A stretch of 64,000 bases of DNA from Octopus bimaculoides (GCF_001194135.2 NC_069008.1:12594830-12658829), one strand, 5' to 3'; counted from the first letter of the stretch, positions 8,993 to 62,539 are shown. Notes: generated by a model not told the origin, from the sequence alone. Program-made: numbers and translations.

Positions 8993-9295
8993 AAGGATCG
9001 AGATCGTTGCCAGTGCCCCTGGACTGGCTCTTGTGCGGGTGGCACATAAAATACACCATTTTGAGCGTGGCCGTTGCCAGTACCGCCTGACTGGCCTTCA
9101 TGCGGGTGACACGTAAAAGCACCCACTACACTCTCTGAGTGGTTGGCGTTAGGAAGGGCATCCAGCTGTAGAAACTCTGCCAAATCAGATTGGAGCCTGG
9201 TGTTGCCATCCGGTTTCACCAGTCCTCAGTCAAATCATCCAACCCATGCTAGCCTGGAAAGCGGACGTTAAACGATGATGATGATGATGATGATG
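8993..9295 (+). mobile_element. RTE-LINE 3' UTR fragment
   Basis: Hairpin modules, conserved tail and (GAT)n. Confidence 0.8.
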
Positions 9296-9599
9296 AAGTT
9301 ACTTGGTGACCATGCTAGTGCTGATGTCATGTTAGAAGCATCCAGTCCACACTGTAAAACTGTGAAAACTTTACCAAAACTGACCTCGTTATGCTTGTGT
9401 CACGTAAAGAGCACTCAGTTCATTCTGCGAGGTGGTTGATATTAGGAAGGGCATCCAGCCATAAAAACCATGCCAAAACAGACACAGAAGTCTGGTGCAG
9501 GCTCCTGCTTGACCACCTCCTCTCAAACTGTCCAACCCATGCCAGCATGGTGATGCTCATATATGTATGTATATATATGTATATATATATATATCACAT

Positions 9600-9845: not shown

Positions 9846-10948
9846 ATATGTGTGTGTGTGTATATATACATATATATATATATATGTGTGTGTATATATA
9901 CATATATATATNNNNNNNNNNTGCATCAAACTGTTTATACACCTGTCTTTGTCATTTGTTTTTCTGTAAATTTCAACTATATATATATATACATACACAT
10001 ACACACACACACACATATATATAGGCAGTATTTTGGTTGTAATCTTTCTTCGTTTATAAATGCCCATTTTTTAAACAATTAAATTTCATTTTATTTGCTT
10101 TACTTCATGTTTTCTATTATTGATGTTTCATTCATGTTGCATGACTTGCCAGCATTCTTCCCACATTCATGTCATATTCTCACACTATGTGTGAGTGTGT
10201 GTGTAAATACAGATATATACAACAGGTTTCCATTATATATATATATATATTATCATTCACAAGACTTGTGTTGACCTGGGACTATAGTGGAAGACATGTC
10301 CAAGATGCCACTCAGTGGAATTGAACTTGAGACTACATAGGTCTTCACAACTCACCCAATCCTATTCTATACATATATTCATTTATCTACACTATTATAT
10401 TATACATCTTCAAAAGAGGTAGAGTACAGTTCAGTTATTCAGGTAAATGTTTATTCCTACAGCTTAACTCTAAAAATATACTAGAATTTATCCAGTTGTA
10501 TTTTAAGTATTCCCTTTATCTTATACTGTTGTTTCTCTGGTATTTCAGGCATTGGCACCAAAGAATTCTATACATCGTCAATGTCTATCATCTTTTGGAG
10601 ACCGAAAGAAAATGTCAGACAGGAAAGCCATAACTCTCCTTATGTAAGTCTATGGCAACTTACAGGCAAATATATTTTGTAAACTGAGATTGATAGCAAT
10701 AATTCTTTTGTTGACTGTCTGGAATATGAACAAGATGACTTTGCATTTGAGTTAAAAAAGGACTTAACAACTTGTTCAAGATATTGACAAAAATCATAGT
10801 AATAGAAATATTTAATAGCAATAAAATATAAAAATGTAAAGAAGATAAATATCTCTATATTGTTATGAGAAAAGATAAACAATGGAAGTTGAATGTTGTG
10901 TGAATAAGTTTAAATATAAAACACAAAAGAATTGATTTGCCTAGTGAC

Positions 10949-12145
10949 ATGAGTAAAGAGCAAGGGAAAACATCACACCACTGTGATGCTTGTGGGAAAT
11001 CATTTTCTAACAGTCGTACATTAATAACACACAGATACACTCATACAGGAGAGAAACCATATAATTGTGATATCTGTGGCAAATCATTCTCTCATAATCA
11101 TAACTTAACTAGACACAAGCGTATTCATACAGGAGAGAAACCATATTGCTGTGATATCTGCGGTAAATCGTTTTCTGAAAATCATCACTTAACTGAACAC
11201 AAACGAAGTCATACAGGAGAGAAGCCATATCATTGTGATGTTTGTGGAAAATCATTCTCTGTAAGTCGTAAATTAACAACACACATACGTATTCATACGG
11301 GGGAGAAGCCATATCACTGTGATATCTGTGGTAGGTCATTCTCTCAAAATGGTGAATTAACTTCACACAAACATAGTCACACTGGAGAGAAACCATATCA
11401 CTGTGATGTTTGTGGTAAATCATTCTCTGAAAGTTGTAAGTTAACTAAACACAAACGTATTCACACAGGAGAGAAACCATATCACTGTGATATCTGTGGT
11501 AAATCATTCACTGAATCTCATCACTTAACTGGACACAAGCATATTCATACAGGAGAGAAACCATATTGTTGTGATATTTGTGGTAAATCATTCTCTGGAA
11601 GTAGTAACTTAACTAGTCACAAACATGTTCATACAGGAGAGAAACCATATCAATGTGATATCTGTGGAAAATCATTCTCTCAGAGTGGAACCTTAACTAA
11701 TCACAAACGTATTCACACAGGAGAGACTCCATATCATTGTGATATCTGTAGCAACTCATTCTCTAAGAGTCGTGAATTAACTATTCACATGCGCGTTCAC
11801 ACAGGAGAGAATCCATATCACTGTGATATCTGTGGTAAATCATTTTCCAGAAATCAACACTTGACTGAACACAAACGTATTCATTCTGGAGAGAAACCAT
11901 ATTGCTGTAATATCTGTGGCAAATCATTCTTTCGAAGTGGTGATTTAACTATTCATATCCGTATTCACACTGGAGAGAAGCCATATCATTGTGATATTTG
12001 TGGTAAATCGTTCTCTCAAGGTCATCACCTAACTGAACACAAACGAAGTCATACAGGAGAGAAACCATATCACTGTGGTACCTGTGGTAAATCATTCTCT
12101 GAAAGTGGTAAGTTAACTAGACACAAACGTATTCACACAGGATAA
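10949..12145 (+). CDS. C2H2 zinc-finger array protein ZNF-B (14 fingers)
   Basis: Intact finger array. ATG at 10949 (agtgacATG). Conserved acceptor AG at 10547-10548. Ends TAA TAG inside a linker. Confidence 0.92.
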   Translation: MSKEQGKTSHHCDACGKSFSNSRTLITHRYTHTGEKPYNCDICGKSFSHNHNLTRHKRIHTGEKPYCCDICGKSFSENHHLTEHKRSHTGEKPYHCDVCGKSFSVSRKLTTHIRIHTGEKPYHCDICGRSFSQNGELTSHKHSHTGEKPYHCDVCGKSFSESCKLTKHKRIHTGEKPYHCDICGKSFTESHHLTGHKHIHTGEKPYCCDICGKSFSGSSNLTSHKHVHTGEKPYQCDICGKSFSQSGTLTNHKRIHTGETPYHCDICSNSFSKSRELTIHMRVHTGENPYHCDICGKSFSRNQHLTEHKRIHSGEKPYCCNICGKSFFRSGDLTIHIRIHTGEKPYHCDICGKSFSQGHHLTEHKRSHTGEKPYHCGTCGKSFSESGKLTRHKRIHTG

Positions 12146-12292
12146 TAGCTATATCACTGTGATATCTGTGGTAAATCATTCTCGTTCATACAGCAGAGAG
12201 TCCATATATTTTTAGCAAATCATTCCCTCAAAGGATTCACTTAACAAAATATGTACTACAGTAGGTGTATCAGTGTGAACATTTTGGTTCTC

Positions 12293-12298
12293 AATAAA
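12293..12298 (+). terminator. poly(A) signal of ZNF-B
   Basis: tcAATAAAtgaagaatt at the homologous position. Confidence 0.55.
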
Positions 12299-12883
12299 TG
12301 AAGAATTTCTCTTGTATGGTATTTGATTGTACTTTCTTTGCTTATATTATTATAAAGATGAACTGAACTACTGCTTCCTCTACATATGGTTATATGTATA
12401 TTGAGAGAATATAGATACATACACTGTGAATTTTGACGAAAAAAATCAATTTGTTGTTGTCATTAAAATGTTTGAACATCTTAAGATATTTTTATAATCA
12501 ATCAAAATAGATTCTTCATTAGATGTTTGATATGCTACATGTGTCATTCTTGATGTAAACATATGGACACATACACCTTTGGGTACAAGCATTTATATAT
12601 ATATGGGTCTTTGTCCATATGTTCATGTGTGTGATTGTGCATGTGTAGTTATCCACCTCCTTCACATATTCTCTCTCTCTTTCTCTCCCCTGCAGACACT
12701 CATTCTATTTCTTTCCATTTGTGTAGTGGTGAGTTTGCATGAATGTACATGTATGAAACAATGTGTTTGTGTATTTATGTACAAGACATACACACTCATA
12801 AAATTTTATTCATCCGCATGAAATGCCTAAGAATCTAGGAGAATACCTCTACATTTTAGCTTGTGACGAGAGGGTATATCAAC

Positions 12884-13330
12884 ATCATCGTTTAACGTCT
12901 GCTTTCCATGCTAGCATGGGTTGGACAGTTTGACTGAGGACTGGCAAGCCAGATGGCTGCACCAGACTCCAATCTGATCTGGCAGAGTTTCTACAGCTGG
13001 ATGCCCTTCCTTATACCAATCACTCTGAGAGTGTAGTGGGTGCTTTTACGTGCCACCAGCACGAGGGCCAGTCAGGCGGTACTGGCAACGGTGATATTAC
13101 GTGCCACCTGCACAGGAGCCAGTCCAGTGGCACTGGCAATGACCTCGCTCGAATGTTGTTTTTCACGTGCTACCAGCACAAATGCCAGTAAGGTGACGCT
13201 AGTAATGATCACACTTGGATGGTGCTTTTTACGTGCCACCGGCACGGGAGCCAGTCAGCGGCCCTGGCAACGATCACTCTCGGATGGTGCTCTTAGCGCT
13301 CCACTAGCACGGATACCAGTCATGTGGTGC
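12884..13330 (-). mobile_element. RTE-LINE 3' UTR fragment with about 5 hairpin modules
   Basis: Conserved tail plus tandem ~60 bp GTGCCAccGGCAC / GCCAGT..ACTGGC modules. Confidence 0.8.
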
Positions 13331-13353
13331 TGTCATTGAATTTGATTTTGGGA

Positions 13354-13722
13354 TCATCATCATCATCGTTTAATGTCTGCTTTCCATGCTAGCATGGGTT
13401 GGACGATTTGACTGAGGACTGGTGAACCAGATGGCTACACCAGGCTCCAATCTAATTTGGCAGAGTCTCTACAGTTGGATGCCCTTCCTAATGCCAACCA
13501 CTCTGAGAGTGTAGTGGATGCTTTTATGTGTCACCAGCACGAGGGCCAGTCACACGGTACTGGCAACGGCCATGCTCAAAAAGGTGTTTTTTACATGCCA
13601 CCTGCACGGCAGCAAGTCCAGCGGCACTGGCAACGACCTCGCTCGAATGATTTTCTAGCGTGCCACCAACACAAGTGCTAGAAGGCAATGCTGGTAACGA
13701 TTACGCTCTAATGGTGCTCTTT
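13354..13722 (-). mobile_element. RTE-LINE 3' UTR fragment (second tandem copy)
   Basis: (CAT)n tail and the same body; runs into an N gap. Confidence 0.8.
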
Positions 13723-14084
13723 ANNNNNNNNNNNNNNNNNNNNNNNNNNNNNNNNNNNNNNNNNNNNNNNNNNNNNNNNNNNNNNNNNNNNNNNNNNNNN
13801 NNNNNNNNNNNNNNNNNNNNNNNNNNNNNNNNNNNNNNNNNNNNNNNNNNNNNNNNNNNNNNNNNNNNNNNNNNNNNNNNNNNNNNNNNNNNNNNNNNNN
13901 NNNNNNNNNNNNNNNNNNNNNNNNNNNNNNNNNNNNNNNNNNNNNNNNNNNNNNNNNNNNNNNNNNNNNNNNNNNNNNNNNNNNNNNNNNNNNNNNNNNN
14001 NNNNNNNNNNNNNNNNNNNNNNNNNNNNNNNNNNNNNNNNNNNNNNNNNNNNNNNNNNNNNNNNNNNNNNNNNNNNNNNNNNNN

Positions 14085-14115
<31 letters not shown>

Positions 14116-16404: not shown

Positions 16405-16763
16405 TTATTATGGGTGGCACATGAGATGCACCATTTTGAGCGTGGCCGTTGCCAGTACCGCCTGACTGGCTCCTGTAGGATTTTCGAGCGAGATCGTTGC
16501 CAGTGCCCCTGGACTGGCTTGTGCGGGTGGCACATAAAAGACACCATTTCGAGCGTGGCCGTTTTCGTGCGGGTGACACGTAAAAGCACCCACTACACTC
16601 TCTGAGTGGTTGGCGTTAGGAAGGGCATCCAGCTGTAGAAACTCTGCCAAATCAGACTGGAGCCTGGTGTTGCCATCCGGTTTCACCAGTCCTCAGTCAA
16701 ATCGTCCAACCCATGCTAGCATGGAAAGCGGACGTTAAACGATGATGATGATGATGATGATGA
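16405..16763 (+). mobile_element. young RTE-LINE 3' UTR fragment
   Basis: Nearly identical to 60207-60432; (GAT)n tail. Confidence 0.85.
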
Positions 16764-21849: not shown

Positions 21850-23380
21850 GAGAGGCTCTTTGTTCGTAACAATGTTAATAGCGCTCCAAACTTTGCCCAG
21901 CGAGTTTTAATTCTGGTAGCTACACTTTCAGAGCATTCTCCTCCACTGTTAATTAAGTCACTTACATAACAGAAACTACTGCTACCTCTAAAGATCCTCC
22001 TGGGCATTCCAGGAATTCTATTCCCAGTGTGTCTTTAGTGTTCGCTGGTCCTACAAATCTGCCACAAAACTGTTTTGTCTGTTAACTTTTCTTTGTTTCC
22101 ACAACATCCCTTATCTGTCCATTGCTTGCACTGGATATACCAGAACGAATTTGTGTGTATTGGCACTTCGTCGCTTACGCCATCGAGCGTTCCAGTTGAT
22201 CCAATCAACGGAACAGCCTGCTCATGAAATTAACGTGCAAGTAGCTGAGCATGTACCCTTAACGTAGTTCTCAGGGATATTCAGCATGACACAGTGTGAC
22301 AAGGCTAACCCTTTGAATTACAGGCGCAACAGAAACAGGAAGTAAGAATGAGAGAAAGTTGTGGTGAAAGAGTACAGCAGAGTTCGCCACCATCCCCTGC
22401 CGGAGCCTCGTGGAGCTTTAGGTGTTTTCGCTCAATAAACACTCACAACGCCCGGTCTGGGAATCGAAACCGCGATCCTATGACCGCGAGTCNNNNNNNN
22501 NNATGAAATTAACGTGCAAGTAGCTGAGCATGTACCCTTAACGTAGTTCTCAGGGATATTCAGCATGACACAGTGTGACAAGGCTAACCCTTTGAATTAC
22601 AGGCGCAACAGAAACAGGAAGTAAGAATGAGAGAAAGTTGTGGTGAAAGAGTACAGCAGAGTTCGCCACCATCCCCTGCCGGAGCCTCGTGGAGCTTTAG
22701 GTGTTTTCGCTCAATAAACACTCACAACGCCCGGTCTGGGAATCGAAACCGCGATCCTATGACCGCGAGTCCGCAGCCCTAACCACTAGGCCATTGCGCC
22801 TCCACACCAGAACGAATTTACATACACCATTTTGACATATCGAGGAAGCGATTACTATTCAGCTTGTTTTCCTGTTTATTACCACTTTGCCTTTTGCTAA
22901 GTTAAACTCTCAGATCCCTTGATTCTACACCTGAAATTTCTTCTGTAGATTAGCATAAAGGAGCTTCCACGTGCCATAGATCTTACCACCTCTATTACAG
23001 ACTGCAGGATTTTGATAAATAAAGGGAGGCTGAGAAATGAATTCTTTCTGCACATTGAATCCATTGCTTCATACATCAGTGACTTTCACCTGACTGTCAG
23101 CACCACCATACATGGTTTTGAGGTCTCTCACCTATTATTCATCGACCCCTAGCTTTGACAACAAACACCAGATATGGGATACAAGACTTTTTCCACACCA
23201 ACATATACTCATTACAAAATAAAATAATTAAGAAAAATAACTAAGAATGGGTAGTAAGATGAATTTGGGCAAATCTTACAGACAACACCACAGTACATGG
23301 CTTGGATGGTTCTCACCAGTCATTTGTCTATCCCTAGCTTCTGTAGCAACTGACATATACAAGACAGGGTTGCTGTCAAG
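21850..23380 (-). mobile_element. ancient RTE RT/post-RT relic downstream of ZNF-C (interrupted by a SINE, partly tandem-duplicated)
   Basis: Degenerate homology to the RT region and to the Cys-rich post-RT region seen at 40260-40660. Confidence 0.6.
22153..22805 (-). mobile_element. tRNA-headed SINE with a 14 bp TSD
   Basis: Head GGAGGCGCAATGGCCTAGTGGTTAGG...GGTTTCGATTCCC. TSD accagaacgaattt at 22139-22152 and 22806-22819. The internal duplication across the 10-N gap is probably an assembly artefact. Confidence 0.85.
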
Positions 23381-23934: not shown

Positions 23935-25311
23935 TCACTGATATGATTGCTCTCCCATGTGAATTTGTTTGTGTTTAGTTAAATTACCTCTAAAAGAGAA
24001 TGATTTGCCACAGATATCACAATGATATGGTTTCTCACCTGTGTGAATACGTATGTGTGTTGTTAAGTTACAACTTTCTGAGAATGATTTACCACAAACA
24101 TCACAGTGATATGGCTTCTCTCCTGTATGAGTTCGTTTGTGTTCAGTTAGGTGATGACTTTGAGAGAATGATTTACCACAGATATTACAATGATATGGTT
24201 TCTCTCCTGTATGACTTCGTTTGTGTTCAGTCAAGTGACAATTTTGAGAGAATGATTTACCACAGATATCACACTGATATTGTTTCTCTCCTGTATGAAC
24301 ACGTATGTGTTTAGTTAAGCTGTTACTTGTAGAGAATGATTTACCACAAATATCACAATATGATTTCTCTCCTGTGTGAATGTGTTTGTGTTTATTTAAG
24401 TAACACTTTACAGAGAATGATTTGCCACAGATATCACACTGAAATGGTTTTTCTCCTGTATGAATACTTTTGTGTATCACTAACTTACAACTTTCAGAGA
24501 ATGATTTATAGCATATATTACAGTGATATGGCTTCTCTCCTGTATGACTTCGCTTGTGTATAGTTAAATTACTACTTTGAAAGAATGATTTGCCACAGAT
24601 ATCACAATGATATGGTTTCTCTCCTGTATGAATGCGTTTGTGTTTAGTTAAGTCGTTACCTCCAGAGAATGATTTACTACAAACATCACAATAATATGGT
24701 TTCTCTCCTGTATGAATATACTTATGTCTAGTTAAGTAACTCTTTACAGAAAATGATTTGCCACACACATCACAATGATATGGTTTCTCACCTGTGTGAA
24801 TACGTTTGTGTGTCATTAAGTTACAACTTTTAGAGAATGATTTGTCACATATATCACAGTGATATGGTTTCTCTCCAGAATGAATACGTTTGTGGTCAGT
24901 TAAGTGATGATTTTGAGAGAATGATTTGCCACAAATATCACAGTGATATGGATTCTCACCTGTATGAATACGTTTGTGAACAGTTAAATCCCCACTTTGA
25001 GAGAATGATTTGCCACAGATATCACAGTGATATGGTTTCTCTCCTGTATGAATACGTCGGTGTTTAATTAAGCTGCTACTCACAGAGAATGATTTACCAC
25101 ATATATCACAGTGATATGGCTTCTCTCCTGTATGAATGCGTTTGTGTGTTTTTAAGTTACCACTTCCAGTGAATGATTTACCACAGATATCACACTGATA
25201 TGGTTTCTCTCCTGTATGAGTGTATCTGTGTGTTATTAATGTACGACTGTTAGAAAATGATTTCCCACAAGCATCACAGTGGTGTGATGTTTTCCCTTGC
25301 TCTTTACTCAT
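23935..25311 (-). CDS. C2H2 zinc-finger array protein ZNF-C (16 fingers)
   Basis: Intact finger array on the minus strand. ATG at 25311. Acceptor at 25712-25713. Candidate upstream donors at 27084 and 27815. Confidence 0.92.
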
Positions 25312-26152
25312 GTCACTAGGCAAATCAATTCTTTTGTGTTTTATATTTAAACTTATTCACACAACATTCAACTTCCATTGTTTATCTTTTCTCATGACAA
25401 TATAGAGATATTTATCTTCTTTACATTTCTATATTTTATTGCTATTAAATATTTCTATTACTATGATTTTTGTCAATATCTTGAACAAGTTGTTAAGTCC
25501 TTTTTTAACTCAAATGCAAAGTCATCTTGTTCATATTCCAGACAGTCAACAAAAGAATTATTGCTATCAATCTCAGTTTACAAAATATATTTGCCTGTAA
25601 GTTGCCATAGACTTACATAAGGAGAGTTATGGCTTTCCTGTCTGACATTTTCGTTCAGTCTTCAAAAGATGATAGACATTGACGATGTATAGAATTCTTT
25701 GGTGCCAATGCCTGAAATACCAGAGAAACAACAGTATAAGATAAAGGGAATATTTAAAATACGACTGGATAAATTCTAGTGTATTTTTAGAGTTAAGCTG
25801 TAGGAATAAACATTTACCTGAACAACTGAACTGTACTCTACCTCTTTTGAAGATGTATTATATAATGGTGAAGATATATTATATGTACAGAACAAGAAGC
25901 TTGTTTTGAAACTATGTGGGTCTTGTGTTCATTTTCACTGTGTGACATGTTGGATATGTATCTTCTCCTCTAGTCCCAGGTCAACCAAAGTCTTGTGATG
26001 TATATTATGGCATACCTTTCTCGCCTACGCTCTAAGAAATAGAGTCTTAATCTCTTGAGTCTTTCCAATAGCTTATATGCTGCATAGAGGCTATCTTCTT
26101 CGTGTAGCTTCATTGGATTGCCTCAAGTTCTGAGATTAATTTATATACCACA

Positions 26153-26512: not shown

Positions 26513-27084
26513 ANNNNNNNNNNNNNNNNNNNNNNNNNNNNNNNNNNNNNNNNNNNNNNNNNNNNNNNNNNNNNNNNNNNNNNNNNNNNNNNNNNNNNNN
26601 NNNNNNNNNNNNNCCCGTTTTTTTTTTTTTTTAGTATAAAGTTTTTTAAAATGGATGAATCTTTAAGTTTTTGCATACATTATTTATTTTGTATATATTT
26701 CCCATTTTCATAACTCTTCTTCATTGCATGTCATTTAATTCGAGAGGTGCATTTCTCATTTCTTTTCCAGCTGGGTTTTTATTTTCGTGACGGGCTTAAA
26801 CTGTATATTGACCAACAAAACATTTGCCCCTTGTTTTTTTTACACCTATTACACTTTTTTCTTTTGTTGTTTTGGTGACCGAGAGTTAAAGTAAACTTTA
26901 ACCGTTTTATTTTACAATATCCAGTTTTCACAAACCTGTAATTACGTCTAAACCTGTTTAATCATTGATTTTAGACAAGGTGGAGAATAAAATTTATATC
27001 AATGTCTGACACACTACATCAAACGGTTTTACATTACGCTTGTCCAAATACTTTTACTAAAGTAACTGTATAATTATGTCTTAC

Positions 27085-28339: not shown

Positions 28340-28881
28340 CGAAATTTTCTCTCCCCACGAGAGTTCCGGACCCCAGTAATGAACTTATTTGCATACAGCC
28401 AATCAGAGCAGTGCTACCTTTATCCTTTCTTCTTTTCTAGTCAGCATCGTGTATTCCTTACTCTTTCCCTCTCTATTGGCAGACAACAACTGTAGGGGCT
28501 TTAAGGTTTGATCATTTTCATTCAGTCAGGAAACAGGATCACACTTTAAACCTCTATAAATTTTTAAAAACATTTTTCTGGACAAAATGAAATAACTCCA
28601 GCAATTCAGTCTGGGCAAGTGTATTATTGTGCCAACGTTGGAGTAACCAGTGAACATCGAAGGATCAACACCAAGAAGGAAGAAATATTATTTACATATT
28701 CGTTTGCCCGACAGGTAGTAAGGGGACGGAGAAGTTGCTGTCTGCCAGTAGAGTGGGAAAGAATAAGGAATGCACAGTGCTGACTAGAAAGGAAGAAAGG
28801 ATAAAGGTGGCTCTGCTCTGATTGGCTGTAAGCAAATGAGTTCCTTACTGGGATCCAGAACTATCGTGGGGAAAAATTTCG
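28340..28881. mobile_element. inverted-repeat element with ~150 bp TIRs carrying octamer + CCAAT
   Basis: 28340-28491 is mirrored by 28733-28881. A third arm follows at ~28890-28960. Consensus arm motif ATTTGCATacagCCAATca (the second arm has ATTTGCTT). Confidence 0.7.
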
Positions 28882-29207
28882 TATGTGGAACACAAAATTT
28901 TTTTCCCACAAGAGTTCCAGACACGAGTTATGAACTCATTTGCATACAGCCAATCAAAGTTCAACTATCAAACNNNNNNNNNNCTGGGATCCAGAACTAT
29001 CGTGGGGAAAAATTTCGTATGTGGAACACAAAATTTTTTTCCCACAAGAGTTCCAGACACGAGTTATGAACTCATTTGCATACAGCCAATCAAAGTTCAA
29101 CTATCAAACTAATTTATGAGTGCATAACAAGTGATGGGCGATAGAATAAGGTCACTTGGGTAAGGAATGACCATGCTTCTTTCCTCTTTTAATAATGCTT
29201 ATTATTA

Positions 29208-30115: not shown

Positions 30116-30299
30116 ATATACAATAAAAAAACAAAACCTAAAACAATTAGCTCAGTGTAAACAATGCCATGAAATAGAATCAAAAGGCAAATAAAGTTAT
30201 ATTAAATACCACACAAAAGAAATTCATCATTTACTGAAACTATTATTGACAACCTGAATTTTCACATTGATACAGTTACTGTAGCAAATGAATACCTAC

Positions 30300-31690
<1,391 letters not shown>

Positions 31691-32309: not shown

Positions 32310-34181
32310 CTATCCTGTGTGAATACATTTGTGTTTAGTCAAGGAGCTCTTTACATAGAAAGATTTGCCACAGATGTCACAATGATACGGTTTCTCTCCT
32401 GTGTGGATGCGTTTGTGAATAGTTACTTCACCACTTCGAAGGAATGATTTGCCACAGATATTACAGCAATACGGTCTTTCTCCTGTATGTATACGTTTGT
32501 GCTCAACCAGATGATGCTTTTGAGAGAATGATTTACCACAAATATTACAGCAATAAGGTCTCTCCCCTGTATGAATGCGTTTGTGCTTAGTTACGCTGCT
32601 GCTTACAGAGAATGATTTACCACAAATATCACAGCAATAAGGCTTCTCTCCTGTGTGAATACGTTTGTGATCAGTTACGTTGCTGCTTGCAGAGAATGAT
32701 TTACCACAAATATCACAGCAATAAGGCTTCTCTCCCGTGTGAATACATTTGTGTGTCGTTAAGCTACTACTTCCAGTAAATGATTTACCACAAACATCAC
32801 ACTGATATGGCTTCTCACCTGTATGTACACGTCTGTGTTTAGTTAACTTACAATTAAGAGAGAATGATTTGCCACAGATATCACATTGATATGGTTTCTC
32901 TCCTGTGTGAATACGTTTGTGGATAGTTAAGCTGCTGCTTACAGAGAATAATTTTCCACAAATATCACAGCAATAAGGTTTCTCTCCTGTATGGATGCGT
33001 TTGTGTTTAATCAAGGAACTTTGTATACAGAAACATTTTCCACAAATGTTGCAATGATATGGTTTCTCTCCTGAGTGGATGTGTTTGTGAATAGTCACAT
33101 CACCACGTCGAAGGAATGATTTGCCACAGATATTACAGCAATATGGTTTTTCTCCTGTATGTACATGTTTGTGGTCAATCAGATGATGCTTTTCAGAGAA
33201 TAATTTACCACAAATATCACAGCAATAAGGTTTCTCTCCCGTGTGAATACGTTTGTGTGTCGTTAAGCTTCCATTCTGAGAGAATGATTTACCACAAACA
33301 TCACACTGATATGGCTTCTCTCCTGTATGAATACGTTTGTGTTCAGTTAGGTGTGGATTATGAGAGCACGATTTACCACAGATATCACAATGATATAGCT
33401 TTTCTCCTGTATGTATACGTCTGTGTTTAGTTAAATTACAATTAAGAGAGAATGATTTGCCACAGATATCACATTGATATGGCTTCTCTCCCATGTGAAT
33501 ACGTTTGTGCTTAGTTAATTCGCTGCTTACAGAGAATGATTTACCACAAATATCACAGCAATAAGGTTTCTCTCCCGTGTGAATACGTTTGTGCTTAGTT
33601 AATTCGCTGCTTATAGAGAATGATTTACCACAAATATCACAGCAATAAGGTTTCTCTCCTGTATGGATGCGTTTGTGAATAGTCACATCACCACGTCGAA
33701 GGAATGATTTCCCACAAACATCACAGTGATATGGTTTCTCTCCAGTATGACTTCTTATGTGTTCAGTTAAATGGTGATTTTGCAAGAATGATCTACCACA
33801 GATATTACAGTGATATGGTTTCTCTCCTGTATGAATACGTTTGTGTCTAGTTATGCTACTAGTTGCAGAGAACGATTTACCACAGATATTACAACTAAAT
33901 GGTTTCTGTTCTGTATGAATATATTTGTGTTTATTTAAGTAATCATTTAGAGAGAATGAACTACCACAGATATCACAGTGATATGGTTTCTCTCCTCTAT
34001 GAACAATACGTTTGTGTCTGCTGAGGCTAGACTTATGAGCAAATGATTTACCACAGACATCACAATTATATGGTTCCTCTCCTGTATGAGTGTATTTGTG
34101 TGTTGTTAATGTACGACTGTTAGAGAATAATTTCCCACAAATATCATAGTGGTGTGGTGTTTTCGCTTTCTCTTTATTCAT
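32310..34181 (-). CDS. C2H2 zinc-finger array protein ZNF-D (22 fingers, first lacks Cys1)
   Basis: Intact 632-codon ORF. ATG at 34181. Acceptor at 34556-34557. Ends TAG TAG. N-terminus and last fingers closest to ZNF-A. Confidence 0.92.
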
Positions 34182-35399
34182 ATCACTACACAAATCAATT
34201 CTTTTCAACTGTGTTTTATTTAAACTTATTCACACATCATTCAACTTCTATTCTTTTTCTTTTCTCATGACAATATAAAGATGTTTATCTTCTTTACATT
34301 TCTATATTTTATTCCTTTTAAATATTTCATCTATGTGATTTTGGTCAGTACATGGATTGGGTTGTAAACTCGTTTTTAAATCTGTCCAAGTTTGATTCAA
34401 ATGCAAAGTAATGTTGTTTACATTCCAGACAAAAGAATTATGGCTATCAGTCTCAATATGCAAGAAATATTTGCATGTTGTTTGGTATAGATTTGTATAA
34501 AATTTTCCTTGAAACTTGAAGATGTAAGAAAAATTTTTCGACACCAATTGTTATTCTGAAATAGAAAAACAACAGTATAAGATACAGGGGTGACTTAAAA
34601 TAAAAGCATGGAAATGTTTGTATATTTCAGATAGAGATAAACAGTAGAAATAAACATTTACTGGAACAACTGAACTGTTTCCCCCTATTTTCAAGATCTA
34701 TATGGGATTGTAGATATGTGTGTGTGTAGTGGGCATCTGACTATAAAATTTGCCTCAACAAATTCCATGCAAAGATGGAAGATTGGAAGGTAAATGATGA
34801 TGATGATTGTAAAATAGTAAATAAATTTAAATATATTAAAATATAAAAGATAAATATTAGTTTAATATGAATTCATCTTTCATGTTAAACAGATTATTGT
34901 TTGAATGGATTGAAAGAAAGCCTTCTTTTGGTGGTCTTTATCAATGGTAGCCTTTAGTCAATATCCAGTTGAATTAGGTGTCTGATGAAATGTCAGAAGA
35001 CAACCATCTCACTTCACTTTTACACACATATATCATTTTATATGAGGATATATTCACGGTGATATGATAAGAATATAAATTTGCGAATTGAATGTATTGA
35101 TTGTAATATGGAGTCCTATATTAATTTCAACAAGTTTAGAAGTGTTTTGGATGGGGAATATAAAAATCTATATATTGTAAGACTCCCAATGGAATAATCA
35201 TTACAATGTTAAATTTTTGTAAGACAATATCATCATCATCATCATCACTAAACCTCTAATTTCTATGTTGGCATGAGCTGGCCACCATGTATCTCTTTTG
35301 ACAGGTTGGCATGAGCTGGCCACCATGTATCTCTTTTGACAGGTTTTCTCTAACTAGAAGCCCTTCCAAATGCCAACCAACTGACACAGTGTATTGGAA

Positions 35400-39089: not shown

Positions 39090-39588
39090 ATTCAACGACT
39101 GGCACCCATGCCAACCTTTCCTTCATTGAGAAGACCTGTTGGGGCAATCGAAATCGTAATTGAACCAAATTCAATGACTGGCACCCGTGCCAGTGGAGCG
39201 CTAACAGCACCATCCAAGCATGATCATTGCCAGAGCAGCTGTCTGGCTTCCGTGCCGGTGGCACCATCTGAACGTGATCATTACCAGCGTTGCTTTACTG
39301 GCACTTGTGCTGGTGGCACGTAAAAAAACATGAGTGAGGTCGTTGTCAGTAAAAAACACCATTTGAGCGTGGCCGTTGCCAGTACCGCCTGACTGGCCCT
39401 CGTGCCGGTGGCATGTAAAAGTACCCACTACATGCTCGGAGTGGTTGGCCTTAGGAAGTGCATCCAGCTGTAGAAACTCTGCCAGATCAGATTGGAGCCT
39501 GGTGTAGCCATCTGGTTCGCCAGTCCTCAGTCAAATTGTCCAACTCATGCTAGCATGGAAAGCGGACATTAAACGATGATGATGATGA
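39090..39588 (+). mobile_element. RTE-type 3' UTR / RTE-tailed SINE with hairpin modules
   Basis: Several modules plus the conserved tail and (GAT)n. Confidence 0.8.
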
Positions 39589-39721
39589 TATTTCATATAA
39601 CATGAATGCCATACATACATTGATATACAATGAAAACAATCACATTTAGGGAAAAAGCTAATAGTTATTGATGCATGAAATGAAATTCATGGTTTCTAAA
39701 TTTGTTTTGTTTGCATTTAAT

Positions 39722-41065
39722 GAGGTTGCAAAGAGAAAGACTTGGAGATGCCACTAGAAAAGGTTACTAAATGAAGAGAATGAATGGGAGAACGAGAGTC
39801 TGCCGAATGTTGACCCAACAGAGGGAAAAGCACAATTGATGCTATATTTCTGGCAAGACAGCTGCAGGAGAAATACCTAGCCAAAGATAAACCTCTGTAC
39901 CTGGCTTTTGTTGACATGGAGAAAGCCTTTGACAGGGTCCCCTGATCCCTTATCTGGTGGTCACTGCAGAAACTAGGAATAGATGAGTGATTAATGAGAG
40001 CTCCACAAGACATGTACAGGGATGCTGTCAGTAAGGTGAAGGTTGGCAACAAGTACAGTGAAAAATTCTTGGTAGGATCACTTCTCAGTCCCCTCTTATT
40101 CATCATAATCCTCCAGGCAATAACAGAGGAATTCAAGACAGGATGCCCTTGGGAGCTTTTCTATGCTGATGACCTTGCTCTAATAACTGAGTCACTATCA
40201 GAAGTAGAGGAAAAGTTTTGGGTGTAGAAGCAAAGTCTAGAATCAAAGAGCCTTAAAGTCATTCTAGCAAAAACCAAAGTCTTAATAAGTAGAAAGGCAG
40301 ACAAACCACAATTCCCCTCAGGTAGATGGCCCTGCTCAATCTGTAGAAAAGGCGTAGGTAGAAACTCCATAAGATGTAGCCAGTGTAAGCTATGGAAACA
40401 TAAGAGGTGCAGCAATATCAAAGGAAGGCTAACTGGGAAGAGAGTTTTTGTATGTGGCAAAGGCTCAGGGGCAATAAACACTGAAGATGTGCAGAAAACA
40501 GCTTCCGTCACATTCCAGGGGGGAAAAACTACAAGTAGTTGATAGCTTCTGTTACCTAGGTGACCAAGTCAGGAGCAGGGGTGGATGTTCTGAGAGCATA
40601 GCTGCTAGAATAAGAATAGCCTGGGCAAAGTTCAGAGAGCTCCTATCGCTACTGACAACAAAGGGCAATAAACTGCGCTTGCAAAAACCTGTTGAGTCAA
40701 GTGAAGTTGTTGTTGTGGCTGATGACAAAACCGCCTGATTGACACCCGTGTTGGTGACATGTAAAAAAGTACCATTCATGTGTGGTTGACGCCAGTGCCG
40801 CCTGATTGGTCCTGTGCTGGTGATACATAAAAAGCACCGTTTGAGCGTGATTGTTGTCAGTGCTGCCTTAATGGCCCTCATGCCGGTGGCATGTAAAAAG
40901 CACCCACTACACTCTGAGTAGTTGGCATTAGGAAGGACATCCAGCTGTAGAAACTTTGCCAGATCAGATTGGAGCCTGGTGCAGCCTTCTGGTTTGCCAG
41001 CCCTGTCGAACCGTCCAACCCATGCCAGCATGGAAAGCGTACATTAAACGACAATGATGATGATG
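39722..41065 (+). mobile_element. 5'-truncated RTE-clade LINE (RT region + 3' UTR)
   Basis: QLQEKYLAKDKPLYLAFVDMEKAFDRV, LFYADDL and SFCYLGD motifs with stops and deletions, followed by the module-containing UTR and (GAT)n tail. Confidence 0.9.
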
Positions 41066-41599
41066 ACACATGTTCAGAAAGATATGATGTAAATAAGTCT
41101 TCACTAGTCCCACATTGCTGTCTGAATTTGTTCATAGCGAACATTCATTGCTTTTCAATAATCTGAATGGATGCTGTTGCAGTTTGGATCAAGAAAATTG
41201 AGTGAACAGTTGATAACTTCAACTGCACGTTAACCTAAAACAATCCCACAAACATCAAAAACAAGATGAAATGACTGTCACTTCATACTAGTCATCAGAT
41301 ATCTGGTACATATATCCCCTAGCATTTAATTAATGCAAAAAGTTGAATGAGACTGAAGGTTTATGAAAGCAAAATACTGTGACATCATGAACACAATACA
41401 GAAAAATTAAAATTTCATTGTACAAAACAAATGATTCTTAAATCAATTTCACAATTTCCTCAGATCTCTCCCCCTTTCTCTAAAATTCATAAACATTTTC
41501 ACCTTGTCTTATAACTTACATCTTTCTCACTTGTTATGTTTTTCCTCAGCAGTTAAGTCTTACAAGTCTCTCTCTGTCTCACTAGTGTCTTCTTATTGC

Positions 41600-44661: not shown

Positions 44662-46026
44662 TTACTCCCCTGTGTGAATATGTTTGTGATTAATTAAGGA
44701 ACTTACTACAGAGAAGCATTTCCCACAGATATCACACTGATAAGGTTTCTCTCCTGTGTGAATACGTATGTGAATAGTTAAATCTCGACTTCGAAGGAAT
44801 GATTTTCCACAGATAATACAGCGATGTGGTTTCTCTCCTGTATGAATCTGTTTGTGGTTAGTCAGGTTGTGATTTCGAGAAAATGATTTACCACAGATAT
44901 CACAGTGATATGGATTCTCTCCTGTGTGAACGCGCATGTGAATAGTCAAATCACCACTTCGAAGGAATGTTTTGCTACAGATATTACAACAAAATGGTTT
45001 CTCTCCTGTATGAATACGCTTGTGTGTGGTTAAATTGCCCCTTAAAGAGAATGATTTGCCGCAGATATCACAACGATATGGTTTCTCACCTGTATGAATA
45101 CGTTTGTGGGTTATTAACTTACCATTTACAGAGAATGCTTTCCCACAATCACAGTGATATGGCTTCTCTCCAGTATGAGTTCGTTTGTGTTCAATTACAC
45201 GTTGATTTTGAGAGAATGATTTACCACAAATATCACAATGATATGGCTTTTCTCCTGTATGAATACGTTTATGTACAGTTAAGCGAGGGTTATGAGAGAA
45301 TGATTTACCACAGATATCACAGTGGTAAGGTTTCTGTCCTGTGTGGGTATACATGTGAACAGTTAATTCACCATTCTGAGAGAATGATTTACCACAGATA
45401 TCACACTGATATGGTTTCTCTCCTGTGTGAATATGTCTGTGTGAGGATAACTCCCCAGTTTGAGAGAATGATTTACCACAGATATCACACTGATAAGGTT
45501 TCTCACCTGTGTGAATACGTTTGTGTCTCGTTAACTTACCACTTTCAGAGAATGATCTGCCACAGATATCACAGTGATAAGGCTTCTCACCTGTATGACT
45601 TCGTTTGTGTTCGGTTAGGTGATGACCTTGAGAAAATGATTTACCACAAATGTCACAATGAAACGGTTTCTCTCCTGTATGGATACGTTTGTGTCTAGTT
45701 AAGTGAGGATTATGAAAAAAGGATTTACCACAGATATCACAATGATATGGTTTCTCTCCTGTATGATTAAGTTTGTGTTTAGTTAAGCTACTATTTGCAG
45801 AGAAGCATTTATCACAAATATCACAGTGATATGGCTTCTCTCCTGTATGACTACGTTTGTGAATCGTTAAGTTACCAGTTCCAAAGAATGATTTGCCACA
45901 GATATCACAATGATATGATTTCTCGCTTGTATGAATATATTTGTGCTTCATTAATTTACGACTTTCAGAGAAGATTTTCCCACAAATATCACAGTCGTGT
46001 GATGTTTTCCCTTTCTCTTTATTCAT
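44662..46026 (-). CDS. C2H2 zinc-finger array protein ZNF-E (16 fingers)
   Basis: Intact finger array. ATG at 46026. Acceptor at 46424-46425. TAA replaces the Lys codon of the last linker. Confidence 0.92.
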
Positions 46027-46609
46027 GTCACTATACAAATCAATTCTTTTAAACTATGATTTATATTTAAACTCATTCACACCCTATTCAACTTCCATTG
46101 TTTGTCTTTTCTCATAATAATATACAGATGTTTATCTTCTTTACATTTCTATATTTCATTCCTATTAAATATTTCTACTACTGTGATTTTTATCAATATC
46201 TGGATTGATTTGTAAACCCCATTTTAATTCAAATGCAAAGTCATCTTGTCCACATTCCAGACAGTCAACAACAGAATAATTGCTATCAACCTCAGTTTAT
46301 ATCATTTGCCGTAGATTTATATAAGGAAAGTTATGTCTTTCCTGTATATGATTTCTCTCGAGTCTTTAAACAATAATAAAAATGCATGATGTATCTGATG
46401 TATACAATTTTTGGTGCCAATGTCTGAAATATTAAAGAAACAACAGTATAAGATACAGAAGATACTAAAAATAAAACAGTACAAATTTTAGTATATTTCT
46501 TATAGAGATAAACTATGGAAATAAACATTTACCTAAACAAGTGAACTGCATCCCACACTTTTGAAGGTGTATATTATTATACTCAAGAGAAATAAATACA
46601 TGTATAGAA

Positions 46610-46910
46610 TAAGCATGTATGTGTGGTGAAGACACTTGCTTTCTAACTATGTAATCTTAGGTTCAGTTCCACTGTGTAGTACCTTGGGCATGTGTTTTCT
46701 ACTATAATCCCAGGGCAATCGAAGTTTTGTGAGTGAATTTCAACAGAGATAACATTTGTGTCGAAGCCTATTGCATCATCATCATCATCATTGCACTGGC
46801 AACGATCTCACTCTAATGTCTTTACTCGTGCCACCGGCACAAGTGCCAGGAAGGCGACGCTGGGAACAGATGCCATCATGATTTCGCTTGCCCCAACAGG
46901 CCTTCGCAAG
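46610..46910. mobile_element. degenerate SINE head (+) followed by an RTE-UTR module fragment (-)
   Basis: GGTTCAGTTCCACTG...CCTTGGGCA at 46660-46690; (CAT)n and gtgccaccggcac at 46775-46850. Confidence 0.55.
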
Positions 46911-55844: not shown

Positions 55845-56175
55845 CTAACTCGGCTTGTTGGGGCAAGCGAAAGCAAAATCGTGATGGCACCTGCACCAGT
55901 GGAGCGCTAAGAGCACTGTTCGAGTGTGATCATTACCAGCGTCGCCTTCCTGGCACTTACGTGAAGTCATTCGAGCGAGATCGTTGCCAGTACCGCCTGA
56001 CTGGCCCTCATGCCGGTGGCACGTAAAAGCACCCACTACACTCTCGGAGTGGTTGGCGTTAGGAAGGACATCCAGCTGTAGAAACTCTGCCAAATCAGAT
56101 TGGTGCCTGGTGTAGCCATCCGGTTCACCAATCCTCAGTTAAATCGTCCAACCCATACTAGCATGGAAAAGCGGA
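55845..56175 (+). mobile_element. RTE-type 3' UTR fragment
   Basis: Modules plus the conserved tail. Confidence 0.8.
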
Positions 56176-57308: not shown

Positions 57309-58902
57309 CTGAAATAACGAAATGTACTTAGTACCTGTATATAAGCGCCTAGTAAAAATAGATAACTGTTATTTCTAAAAAAAAATTCACTTCTAATATA
57401 CAGAATCATTTTCAAATGTATTGAAACTTTTTTAAAATTATTTCAAATAAAAATAATAAAATAAATCTATAAATTACTCCATCTGCAAAACCTGATAGAT
57501 TTAGTACTAACAAAATAATTTGATCTAAATGTTTCTAAAGAAAAATGGGATCTTTTCCCTTTGAACGGCACATCGAGAAATTAATTTTTTGTCACTAAAC
57601 ACTTTCAAACTTCGGACACTGGTAAAATGTGTCATATAAAACATATTTTACTCTTAGTGCTGTTGAGAAAAGTTTATATTTTCAAAGTTATTTCGTGTTA
57701 AAGTTGTCGTATTTCGGTAATTTCAACCAATCAATAACGTGTATTCAGCTGAATAAAATTACTGCCGTTGTTTGTCAACAACTATCGGCGGTGTATATTT
57801 CGTTTGTCACTTATTTATGACATCGTTCGTGCGTTTGTACTGGTTTNNNNNNNNNNNNNNNNNNNNNNNNNNNNNNNNNNNNNNNNNNNNNNNNNNNNNN
57901 NNNNNNNNNNNNNNNNNNNNNNNNNNNNNNNNNNNNNNNNNNNNNNNNNNNNNNNNNNNNNNNNNNNNNNNNNNNNNNNNNNNNNNNNNNNNNNNNNNNN
58001 NNNNNNNNNNNNNNNNNNNNNNNNNNNNNNNNNNNNNNNNNNNNNNNNNNNNNNNNNCTGGATGGTTGTACATTTACAGATTTTTATTATGTCACATGTA
58101 TCACTTATACTTATTTTGCAAATCATAATATTTATTGCTTATTTACATTTCATACAACATTTTCATGAAACTAATTGAGCCATCGAATTTAGAAATATTT
58201 TACAGGTTTCATTGTTTATGTTCGATTACTTTTAATACTGATTTTTTTGTGCGTCCAATTTCTAATTTTTGCAGACAATATCACTTTTATACTTTGACAT
58301 GTGAGTAGAACTCATGTCTGGAAACTTCGTGACATACTTAGATTGTTGAAAAAAAATCAATAATAGGTCCCTTCAAATGGATCCTTCTATCTACTGCATA
58401 TTACTAATATTATATTTAAACAACCCAAGGGAAATAACCCATACCACCTGAAGTTTTTAGTGAAGCGATCAATATTTGATTCTTTTGATCAGCTAACCTA
58501 ATTCTGCATTTCACTACTCAGTTTTGAACTGCTAAACATTATTATTGCGCTTCTTTGATTTGAATCTTAAACAATTCATTCATATATTTCTATACATACA
58601 TACTTTTTTGAATGCCCATTACTCCAATAATTCTGCATTTTTACAGTTACACTTTTTCCATGACAGTAGATAAATTTTTTATTCCACAACATATTTGTAG
58701 TGGGTTCAGACTGTCTGATTATAACTGAGGAATTGTCTGCAACAGCCAGCCACCACTAATAGTAGTGGTTTCAGTACAGTTCCCAGAAGTCATAATGTCT
58801 CTCCAAGGAGAGAGAGGAGGGAGACAAGACAGTCAGAAAGAGAGAGATTAACATACCCACATAACACATACAGATTGTCTGACCTACGCACATATATATA
58901 TA

Positions 58903-59032
58903 TCATCATCGTTTAACGTCCGCCTTCCATGCTAGCATGGGTTGGACGATTTGACTGAGGACTGGTGAAACTGGATGGCAACACCAGGCTCCAATCTAAT
59001 TTGGCAGAGTTTCTACAGCTGGATGCCCTTCC
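58903..59032 (-). mobile_element. RTE 3' tail fragment
   Basis: Conserved tail in reverse orientation. Confidence 0.8.
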
Positions 59033-59054
59033 TATATATATATATAAATATATA

Positions 59055-60432
59055 TTTCTAGTGAGACAGTTGCAGGAGAAATACCTAGCTAAGGATAAAC
59101 CTCTGTACCTGGCTTTCGTTGACATGGAGAAAGCCTTTGACAGGGTCCCCCGATCCCTTATCTGGTGGTCAATGAGGAAACTTGGGATAGAAGAATGGTT
59201 AGTGAGAGCTGTGCGAGCCATGTACAGAGATGCTGCCAGTAAGGTGAGGGTTGGAAATGAGTACAGCAATGNNNNNNNNNNNNNNNNNNNNNNNNNNNNN
59301 NNNNNNNNNNNNNNNNNNNNNNNNNNNNNNNNNNNNNNNNNNNNNNNNNNNNNNNNNNNNNNNNNNNNNNNNNNNNNNNNNNNNNNNNNNNNNNNNNNNN
59401 NNNNNNNNNNNNNNNNNNNNNNNNNNNNNNNNNNNNNNNNNNNNNNNNNNNNNNNNNNNNNNNNNNNNNNNNNNNNNNNNNNNNNNNNNNNNNNNNNNNN
59501 NNNNNNNNNNNNNNNNNNNNNNNNNNNNNNNNNNNNNNNNNNNNNNNNNNNNNNNNNNNNNNNNNNNNNNNNNNNNNNNNNNNNNNNNNNNNNNNNNNNN
59601 NNNNNNNNNNNNNNNNNNNNNNNNNNNNNNNNNNNNNNNNNNNNNNNNNNNNNNNNNNNNNNNNNNNNNNNNNNNNNNNNNNNNNNNNNNNNNNNNNNNN
59701 NNNNNNNNNNNNNNNNNNNNNNNNNNNNNNNNNNNNNNNNNNNNNNNNNNNNNNNNNNNNNNNNNNNNNNNNNNNNNNNNNNNNNNNNNNNNNNNNNNNN
59801 NNNNNNNNNNNNNNNNNNNNNNNNNNNNNNNNNNNNNNNNNNNNNNNNNNNNNNNNNNNNNNNNNNNNNNNNNNNNNNNNNNNNNNNNNNNNNNNNNNNN
59901 NNNNNNNNNNNNNNNNNNNNNNNNNNNNNNNNNNNNNNNNNNNNNNNNNNNNNNNNNNNNNNNNNNNNNNNNNNNNNNNNNNNNNNNNNNNNNNNNNNNN
60001 NNNNNNNNNNNNNNNNNNNNNNNNNNNNNNNNNNNNNNNNNNNNNNNNNNNNNNNNNNNNNNNNNNNNNNNNNNNNNNNNNNNNNNNNNNNNNNNNNNNN
60101 NNNNNNNNNNNNNNNNNNNNNNNNNNNNNNNNNNNNNNNNNNNNNNNNNNNNNNNNNNNNNNNNNNNNNNNNNNNNNNNNNNNNNNNNNNNNNNNNNNNN
60201 NNNNNGGCACATAAAAGACACCATTTCGAGCGTGGCCGTTTTCGTGCGGGTGACACGTAAAAGCACCCACTACACTCTCTGAGTGGTTGGCGTTAGGAAG
60301 GGCATCCAGCTGTAGAAACTCTGCCAAATCAGACTGGAGCCTGGTGTTGCCATCCGGTTTCACCATTCCTCAGTCAAATCGTCCAACCCATGCTAGCATG
60401 GAAAGCGGACGTTAAACGATGATGATGATGAT
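59055..60432 (+). mobile_element. young 5'-truncated RTE LINE (middle in gap)
   Basis: Clean RT frame LVRQLQEKYLAKDKPLYLAFVDMEKAFDRVPRSLIWWSMRKLGIEEWLVRAV before the gap; 3' UTR and (GAT)n after it. Continuity across the gap is assumed. Confidence 0.75.
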
Positions 60433-62378: not shown

Positions 62379-62533
62379 CAAGGAGATAGATGTACACATA
62401 TGCATAATACATGCACAGATACACAATAAAAAACTAAATAATAAAGAAAAATATCTCAGAAGTGCCATAACATGAATTTGGACAAAAAAGGTAAATAAAG
62501 TTATATTAAACACCATACAACATAAATTCATCA

Positions 62534-62539
62534 TTTATT
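62534..62539 (-). terminator. poly(A) signal of ZNF-F
   Basis: tcAATAAAtgatgaatt on the minus strand. Confidence 0.55.

Follow-up and report, generated by a model that had tools for sequence, protein, structure and literature searches.

The tandemly clustered zinc-finger genes ZNF-B and ZNF-C of Octopus bimaculoides, which lie in opposite orientations within the 64 kb of DNA analysed here (the window), shared a tract of 661 nt that differed at only nine positions and contained no indels (98.6% identity). This tract was very probably produced by recent ectopic (i.e., non-allelic) gene conversion between two old, inverted paralogs. Its identity exceeded that of the homologous sequence on both sides; the excess extended to silent and non-coding sites, was absent from the other paralogs of the cluster, and took the form of a collinear replacement. 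Outside the tract, the paralogous unit was old everywhere.

Chromosome CM046628.1 of assembly GCA_001194135.2 carries gene calls for the ORFs of both ZNF-B and ZNF-C, and the loci fetched from it were exact substrings of the window. According to its description, the chromosome-scale version 2 of this assembly combines new Hi-C data with the earlier shotgun assembly (PMC9068888); since version 2 is therefore a Hi-C scaffolding of that shotgun assembly, the underlying sequence is short-read based. The window contained 15 N-runs. Five complete units (A to E) with a common leader, placed directly before a long C2H2 ORF, were present, besides fragments at approximately 30.3–31.5 kb and from approximately 62.5 kb to the end of the window. 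Several C2H2 paralogs were therefore clustered on one chromosome segment of 64 kb, and ZNF-B and ZNF-C are members of a tandem cluster of C2H2 poly-zinc-finger genes. The coding ORFs of the two genes and the comparators were as follows:

10949 to 12145, plus strand: coding ORF of ZNF-B, 398 aa, with 14 C2H2 fingers and no further domain
23935 to 25311, minus strand: coding ORF of ZNF-C, 458 aa, with 16 C2H2 fingers
740 to 1307 (leader, with the ORF extending to 2681), plus strand: paralog A, leader 79% identical to the tract
34182 to 34702 (leader, with the ORF from 32310), minus strand: paralog D, leader 79% identical to the tract
46027 to 46736 (leader, with the ORF from 44662), minus strand: paralog E, leader 82% identical to the tract

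Both ZNF-B and ZNF-C had canonical C-X2-C-X12-H-X3-H fingers joined by TGEKPY-type linkers, and their finger arrays had a period of 84 nt (Tandem Repeats Finder). Pfam matched the called proteins to zf-C2H2 and zf-H2C2_2 (E 1e-70 to 1e-139); C2H2 families were the only ones returned, and none of KRAB, SCAN, BTB and ZAD was found by Pfam in these proteins. Just 10 residues followed the Met ahead of finger 1. This first finger was a positionally conserved 'anchor' in all five paralogs, with the helix SNSRTLITH or near variants of it, and the fingers after it varied among the five. The leader was likewise a family-wide feature, not peculiar to B and C; its last 300 nt were the best-conserved part of the unit (0.77–0.93 among all paralogs). 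The A-D pair provided an internal control, since it had the look of a plain younger duplicate; identity was 87%, and was uniform (84–93%) across leader, fingers 1–2 and 3' flank.

A near-identical inverted tract had been claimed in the first-pass annotation of this DNA, at 97–98% identity, slightly under the measured value, and at positions 10402–11063. The start of this interval stood, but its end did not, because the tract stops at 11062. The two copies and the intervals containing their breakpoints were:

10402 to 11062, plus strand: putatively converted tract, ZNF-B copy, comprising 547 nt of non-coding leader and codons 1–38
25198 to 25858, minus strand: putatively converted tract, ZNF-C copy, the reverse complement of the B copy
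10381 to 10402, plus strand: 5' breakpoint interval, pairing with 25858–25879
11035 to 11063, plus strand: 3' breakpoint interval, pairing with 25197–25225

The copies aligned in a gapless inverted register (position p with position 36260-p) over all 661 nt, and both were collinear with the A, D and E leaders. The mismatches were at 10437, 10479, 10497, 10507, 10598, 10603, 10607, 10831 and 10864 (B coordinates), and the exact-match runs included two of 223 and 198 nt. In the coding part, which ran from the Met through 10 further residues and finger 1 to the first linker (TGEKPY), all 38 residues were identical between B and C, as had been stated, and so were 114 of 114 bases; the value for these codons was 1.000, against 0.82–0.90 in the other pairs. 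The 547 non-coding bases gave 0.984 for B and C, against 0.79–0.87 in the nine other pairs of paralogs. Since the same columns were 79–87% identical in those nine pairs, local constraint cannot explain the identity of B and C.

A sliding-window comparison, one of the checks proposed with the original claim, showed the same contrast along the unit. When the gapless register was divided into 50-nt bins, identity was 0.96–1.00 within the tract and 0.64–0.94 downstream (mean approximately 0.80), and was at the random level upstream. Uniformly high identity along the unit had been named as an observation that would count against conversion; instead, both flanks and arrays were diverged. A repeat finder reported a single inverted pair (10381–11904 and 24356–25879) with an overall identity of 88%, which the 50-nt profile split into the near-identical tract and then sequence at about 0.80.

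Both breakpoints were sharp. At the 5' end, four mismatches within 21 nt (10381–10401) gave way to near-identity in an AT-rich stretch adjoining an indel, some 550 nt 5' of the ATG. At the 3' end, the breakpoint interval corresponded to the codons YTHTGEKPY after finger 1; the last state limited to B and C was a G at 11034, in an Arg codon, while the first downstream mismatches were at 11063 and 11065, and the first codon after the linker was AAT (Asn) in B and CAG (Gln) in C. The TGEKPY linker, at the 3' breakpoint, was the most conserved sequence of the array. Neither terminal repeats nor target-site duplications were found at the edges of the tract, and there was no insertion relative to the leaders of A, D and E.

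The segments beyond the breakpoints, which show no sign of homogenisation, were delimited as follows:

10253 to 10401, plus strand: unconverted upstream flank of B, matching 25859–25998 of C at 74–81% with indels
25859 to 25998, minus strand: unconverted upstream flank of C
11063 to 12145, plus strand: unconverted finger array of B, fingers 2–14
23935 to 25197, minus strand: unconverted finger array of C, fingers 2–16

Homology across the family began about 150 nt 5' of the tract, near 10253, and in this upstream segment B was no closer to C (74–81%) than to E. The segment did, however, carry a 13-nt deletion common to B and C, relative to A and E, and B and C were therefore considered to be true but old sister copies. 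Past both stop codons were decayed finger relics, and then a homologous tail with an AATAAA signal; these 3' tails were approximately 75% identical between B and C and included several indels. Thus, the upstream and 3' flanks were far more diverged than the tract, as the first-pass annotation had held.

It had likewise been noted that identity ends in the first linker, and the helices of finger 2 indeed differed (SHNHNLTRH in B, TGSGNLKTH in C). Over fingers 2–13, in-register identity (0.798) was close to the out-of-register value (0.790), and the similarity of the two arrays (approximately 80%) was that of any two fingers in the family. The first fingers of B and C were the only pair to be 100% identical among 2,781 finger pairs. 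By the method of Nei and Gojobori, dS was 0.54 and dN was 0.18 for codons 39–318 in register, while dS and dN were both 0 for codons 1–38; third-position identity was 0.72 and 1.00 respectively. Finger 2 of C was closest to finger 2 of E (0.87), against 0.79 for the B2-C2 comparison. Because this finger of C resembles E while upstream sequence places B and C as sisters, the family was already a mosaic.

Formal tests isolated the same region. A Sawyer-type test (i.e., of the kind implemented in GENECONV, which had also been proposed as a check) was applied to 671 polymorphic, ungapped columns; the longest concordant run between B and C covered 58 sites (10608–10823), where permutation gave a mean of 15 and a maximum of 39 (P ≤ 1e-4), and no other pair of paralogs stood out in this test. 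A two-breakpoint maximum chi-square analysis placed the tract at 10402–11089, with a value of 134.8 against a permutation maximum of 27.4. Given the divergence of B and E over the same columns (17.9%), the binomial probability of nine or fewer differences was 2e-43. Taken with the sharp breakpoints, the diverged homologous flanks and the contrast in dS (0 and 0.54), these permutation results upheld the earlier proposal of a recent conversion between inverted paralogs.

Jukes-Cantor distances were 0.014 for B and C within the tract, 0.20 for B and E over the same columns, and 0.33 for B and C upstream. From the ratio of the first to the other two, the event would fall within roughly the last 4–7% of the time since the paralogs separated. 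Eight of the nine differences in the tract were transitions, compared with transition to transversion counts of 16:17 and 96:74 in the flanks. When polarised with A, D and E, there were 4–5 derived states in B and 3–4 in C. As to which copy served as donor, segment-by-segment identities to A, D and E, nearly equal over the tract, and the affinities of finger 2 gave conflicting or faint indications. The transition bias, and the presence of derived states on both copies, are as predicted by independent mutation after homogenisation. Mismatches were unevenly distributed, however, with seven in the 5' 206 nt and two in the 3' 455 nt (Fisher P = 0.005; P = 0.03 when three clustered changes, spanning no more than 10 nt, were counted as one). 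One simple event may thus not account for the pattern, and a second, shorter conversion may perhaps be nested within an older one.

The conversion was most simply reconstructed as follows. ZNF-B and ZNF-C would be old, tail-to-tail inverted paralogs in a C2H2 cluster, one of which suffered a DNA break that was repaired from the other, inverted copy as template, approximately 14 kb away. Synthesis-dependent strand annealing without crossover would be the simplest route. Some 0.66–0.69 kb would have been overwritten, taking in the greater part of the non-coding leader together with the start codon, finger 1 and the linker that follows it, and each copy would since have gained a few point mutations. 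We infer both the repair mechanism and the singleness of the event from this pattern. The length of the tract, about 0.7 kb, is not unusual for an ectopic conversion event.

Several features within the tract bear on what the leader might do, and were predicted from sequence:

10443 to 10444, plus strand: GT of a donor-like site (CAG/GTAAAT), kept in five of five paralogs
10546 to 10548, plus strand: CAG of an acceptor-like site, with a polypyrimidine tract, kept in five of five paralogs
10942 to 10944, plus strand: TAG immediately 5' of the ATG, a putative signal kept in five of five paralogs

Ten upstream ATGs lay in the 400 nt before the start codon, where every frame also had stops; for this reason, much or most of the tract may be intronic and not a 5' UTR that is scanned. 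The exon model of the first-pass annotation, in which an acceptor precedes the whole leader and the start codon, is compatible with the splice-like signals, but is one of at least two models that fit them. Alternatively, the conserved 300 nt before the ATG could be a candidate promoter, and that the tract acts as a regulatory leader is best treated as a hypothesis. The family-wide homologous region upstream of 10402, another possible position for a promoter, was left unconverted. Searches of the leader returned no Rfam family at the gathering threshold and no tRNA (ARAGORN). A structured RNA was rejected, since RNAalifold applied to the five leaders gave -19 kcal/mol with unfavourable (positive) covariation and compensatory changes at 1 of 62 pairs. 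A coding leader, or hidden N-terminal domain, was rejected also as far as the tract itself is concerned; it had an in-frame TGA at 10901, many other stops and non-triplet indels, and Pfam found zinc fingers only.

The probable conversion thus homogenised leader and finger 1 and left the finger arrays different, which agrees with the description given beforehand. The first-pass annotation had gone on to see in this a way for new specificity to arise under an old control region, and here its logic was reversed. The arrays were already different long before (dS = 0.54); therefore, conversion created no new specificity and merely made the 5' ends alike.

Among the alternatives to conversion, an assembly artefact was the only serious rival, although quite an improbable one. 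It would require one gene's tract to have been assembled from reads belonging to the other gene, or to the second allele of the other, through a chimeric de Bruijn path or a gap closure with mis-recruited paralogous reads, such that the true leader is missing. This is a short-read assembly with many gaps (the 15 N-runs noted above), and unmerged perfect duplicates occur at 10-N gaps elsewhere in the window (22224–22492 repeated as 22503–22771, and 28848–28973 repeated as 28984–29109); furthermore, the two long exact runs in the tract are hard to resolve with short reads. However, a single source of reads would have produced no differences, where nine were seen, eight of them transitions and with derived states on both copies; a second allele would have to differ by 1.4%, which in our judgement seems too high for allelic variation here. 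A chimera also requires two junctions, both of them in register, and the 5' one has no long k-mer in common with the other paralogs. Each tract lies within a single contig, free of gaps, and is bordered by unique sequence on either side; there is no gap within 480 nt of either copy, the nearest N-runs being 9912–9921 and 26514–26613. An unlikely elaboration is that the exchange was resolved as a crossover, which inverted the 14.1-kb segment 11063–25197 and so swapped the arrays between upstream regions, leaving the tract as a patch of conversion or heteroduplex. The geometry permits this, as both arrays lie between the inverted repeats that the tracts make up, and the affinities of the flanks are incongruent, B and C being sisters upstream while finger 2 of C is nearest that of E. 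Yet such incongruence is equally expected from finger gain and loss or from older exchanges, and is not resolved by a swap; moreover, a crossover alone leaves the copies non-identical, so that conversion is needed anyway, and a single haplotype cannot reveal a past inversion.

Explanations that dispense with conversion fared worse. That ZNF-B and ZNF-C arose by recent inverted duplication of a whole gene, about 1.4% ago in divergence, with arrays that then diverged through positive selection and flanks that were overwritten or decayed, was thought highly unlikely. Poly-zinc-finger arrays do evolve fast under positive selection (PMC2604467), but silent sites in these arrays are approaching saturation (dS of 0.54, third-position identity of 0.72), the upstream flank and 3' tail are 20–26% diverged with indels, and the arrays lack any in-register signal; several extra events would be needed on both sides of the tract. 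A recent whole-gene duplicate was ruled out on the grounds of dS and flank divergence. Least credible of all was the absence of any transfer, with the tract maintained by extreme purifying selection in B and C only, or introduced by independent insertions of the same mobile element. Conservation of the last 300 nt of the leader across all paralogs (0.77–0.93) is in keeping with constraint, but other paralogs differ at 13–21% of the same columns, and identity at silent and non-coding sites is confined to B and C. A mobile-element origin was rejected, given collinearity with the leaders of A, D and E, the lack of terminal repeats and target-site duplications, and the restriction of the sequence to five gene-linked copies in the window.

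Recent ectopic conversion between ZNF-B and ZNF-C has consequences beyond the two genes. Any phylogeny or dS-based dating of C2H2 expansions that takes in 5' regions or finger 1 will be misled, and short-read mapping and expression estimates cannot separate B from C over the first 660 bases. Octopus C2H2 genes number roughly 1,800. As an inverted repeat, the two tracts are now able to mediate inversion, and thereby to exchange arrays between upstream regions. It is conceivable, if doubtful, that such 661-bp inverted tracts are a recurrent recombination substrate, in which conversion keeps a constant 5' module alike and an occasional crossover swaps arrays as a germline polymorphism. The constant module would in this case comprise the leader, the start codon and the anchor finger 1. 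The uneven density of mismatches, with its hint of nested events, is compatible with recurrence. Were such tracts found to be enriched at the 5' module across the family, this would amount to a maintained architecture of constant and variable parts.

A search with the full-length ZNF-B protein returned only vertebrate and other poly-zinc-finger proteins, at 61% identity or less, with the query itself absent among the matches, and a 42-aa N-terminal query produced no ortholog candidate. Exact look-up in a clustered protein collection matched none of the five paralog proteins, whether or not the stop codon was included. Contigs encoding ZNF-B and ZNF-C were found in the source assembly alone; both copies of the tract are known from this one short-read-based assembly. 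The literature contained no description that we could find of conversion, or of an individual tract, among octopus C2H2 genes.

This tract is very probably an instance, clean and well bounded, of ectopic conversion at work inside the greatly expanded C2H2 clusters of octopus. Short interlocus conversion tracts are routinely found with GENECONV among clustered poly-zinc-finger paralogs (Emerson & Thomas 2009, PMC2604467). In those cases, as here, clustered C2H2 paralogs had short segments homogenised while their arrays diverged, and the signature was a run of the Sawyer type. Theirs were vertebrate and insect genes, mostly of KRAB, SCAN or BTB types, whereas the present genes are from a cephalopod, have no effector domain that was found, are inverted relative to each other and were affected mainly in non-coding 5' sequence and finger 1, not in the array. 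Conversion is known to disturb the alignment of zinc-finger genes (bioRxiv 10.1101/2022.11.29.518450). Within cephalopods, conversion has been invoked for species-specific similarity in protocadherin clusters, by Albertin et al. (2022, PMC9068888), where squid C2H2 genes are also said to show no phylogenetically related subclusters. The protocadherins are encoded in the same genome and, like the C2H2 genes, make up a large tandem family specific to the lineage; that evidence was phylogenetic, however, did not concern C2H2 genes and, as far as the accessible text goes, described no individual tract.

The process itself is a known and ordinary one in gene families of this kind, and no new mechanism is implied. 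The human fetal globin genes HBG1 and HBG2 were reportedly described by Slightom, Blechl and Smithies in 1980 as carrying a sharply bounded conversion tract at their 5' ends. Like ZNF-B and ZNF-C, these are old duplicates with a near-identical 5' part, which in the globin genes takes in upstream sequence and the first exons, an old 3' divergence and a discrete breakpoint between the two. The globin genes lie as direct repeats at a distance of about 5 kb, and their boundary coincides with a simple-sequence repeat in an intron; by contrast, the octopus copies are inverted and 14 kb apart, with a boundary in a conserved, linker-coding motif. A parallel for the orientation is provided by the palindromes of primate Y chromosomes, where conversion occurs from arm to arm between inverted repeats. 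Both systems involve exchange within a chromosome, non-reciprocal in the palindromes and presumably so here, through which inverted copies stay near-identical and the spacer is not deleted. The arms of Y palindromes, which extend from tens of kb to Mb, are homogenised over their whole length, whereas only 0.66 kb of a paralogous unit of approximately 2.3 kb was homogenised in ZNF-B and ZNF-C.

Three of the nine differences between ZNF-B and ZNF-C, within the near-identical tract shared by these two C2H2 zinc-finger paralogs (B and C hereafter), fell within only 10 nt (10598-10607), where B reads GGAGACCGAAAG and C reads GAAGACTGAACG. The B states at these positions were absent from all three paralogs compared, i.e., A, D and E, which carry the same upstream leader. 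This cluster could represent a multi-nucleotide mutation, or else a micro-patch copied from a paralog outside the window. Across the first 38 codons (10949-11062 in B, with homologous positions in A, D and E), non-synonymous differences between paralogs greatly exceeded synonymous differences; for instance, there were 14 versus 2 between A and B, and 16 versus 5 between B and E. Such an excess is suggestive of either relaxed or positive selection acting on the N-terminus and on finger 1, even though both are conserved in position; the counts are small and the comparison is informal.

At the opposite end of the gene, decayed zinc-finger relics were identified beyond the stop codons of both B and C:

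12146-12270, relics past the B stop codon
23780-23934, relics past the C stop codon

Both arrays have therefore been shortened by nonsense or frameshift mutations. Downstream of the relics, B and C have in common a 3' tail with an AATAAA motif, which lies at 12293-12298 in B. Two further zinc-finger arrays were found, neither of them with a copy of the shared leader in the window:

30187-31525, minus strand
62493-64000, minus strand, extending past the window end

The first of these includes a 220-aa ORF (30863-31525) that is called as a gene; the array is likely to be a gene fragment or pseudogene.

The window also contained an interspersed repeat of approximately 300 nt, present in at least 11 copies with 76-99.6% identity and in both orientations, which is probably a young SINE-like element:

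copies 1-6: 185-467, 8996-9296, 12875-13156, 13353-13649, 16483-16763, 18064-18221
copies 7-11: 39350-39589, 40791-41066, 55970-56175, 58902-59034, 60206-60433

Runs of N, i.e., contig ends, adjoined several of these copies. The largest 'family' returned by the repeat finder (D1; 503 copies at 8-nt spacing, in the region 13700-14100 and at other N-runs) coincided with N-runs, at 13724-14084 and elsewhere; rather than a genuine repeat, it seems to be an artefact produced by N matching N. Two perfect direct duplicates directly flanked 10-N gaps:

22224-22492 and 22503-22771, 100% identical, either side of the gap at 22493-22502
28848-28973 and 28984-29109, 100% identical, either side of the gap at 28974-28983

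Both pairs resemble contig overlaps left unmerged, which would make them assembly artefacts, not biology.

Individual fingers in C, D and E look broken. The repeat finder's 165-nt spacing arose because the linker at the junction of C fingers 11 and 12 (within 23935-25311) is short by one residue. In finger 1 of D (34181 region) the first Cys is replaced by Tyr (HHYDICGK), and finger 11 of E (within 44662-46026) has C-X1-C (CDCGKAF). D (32310-34181) and A (1308-2681) are a younger paralog pair, being 87% identical in the leader, 88% in finger 1, 91% in finger 2, and 84% across a stretch made up of the final 250 nt of coding sequence and some 120 nt of 3' flank. Within the D array, fingers 7 and 8 were 95% identical, fingers 9 and 16 94%, and fingers 13 and 21 93%; these internal duplications indicate recent expansion of the array by unequal exchange.
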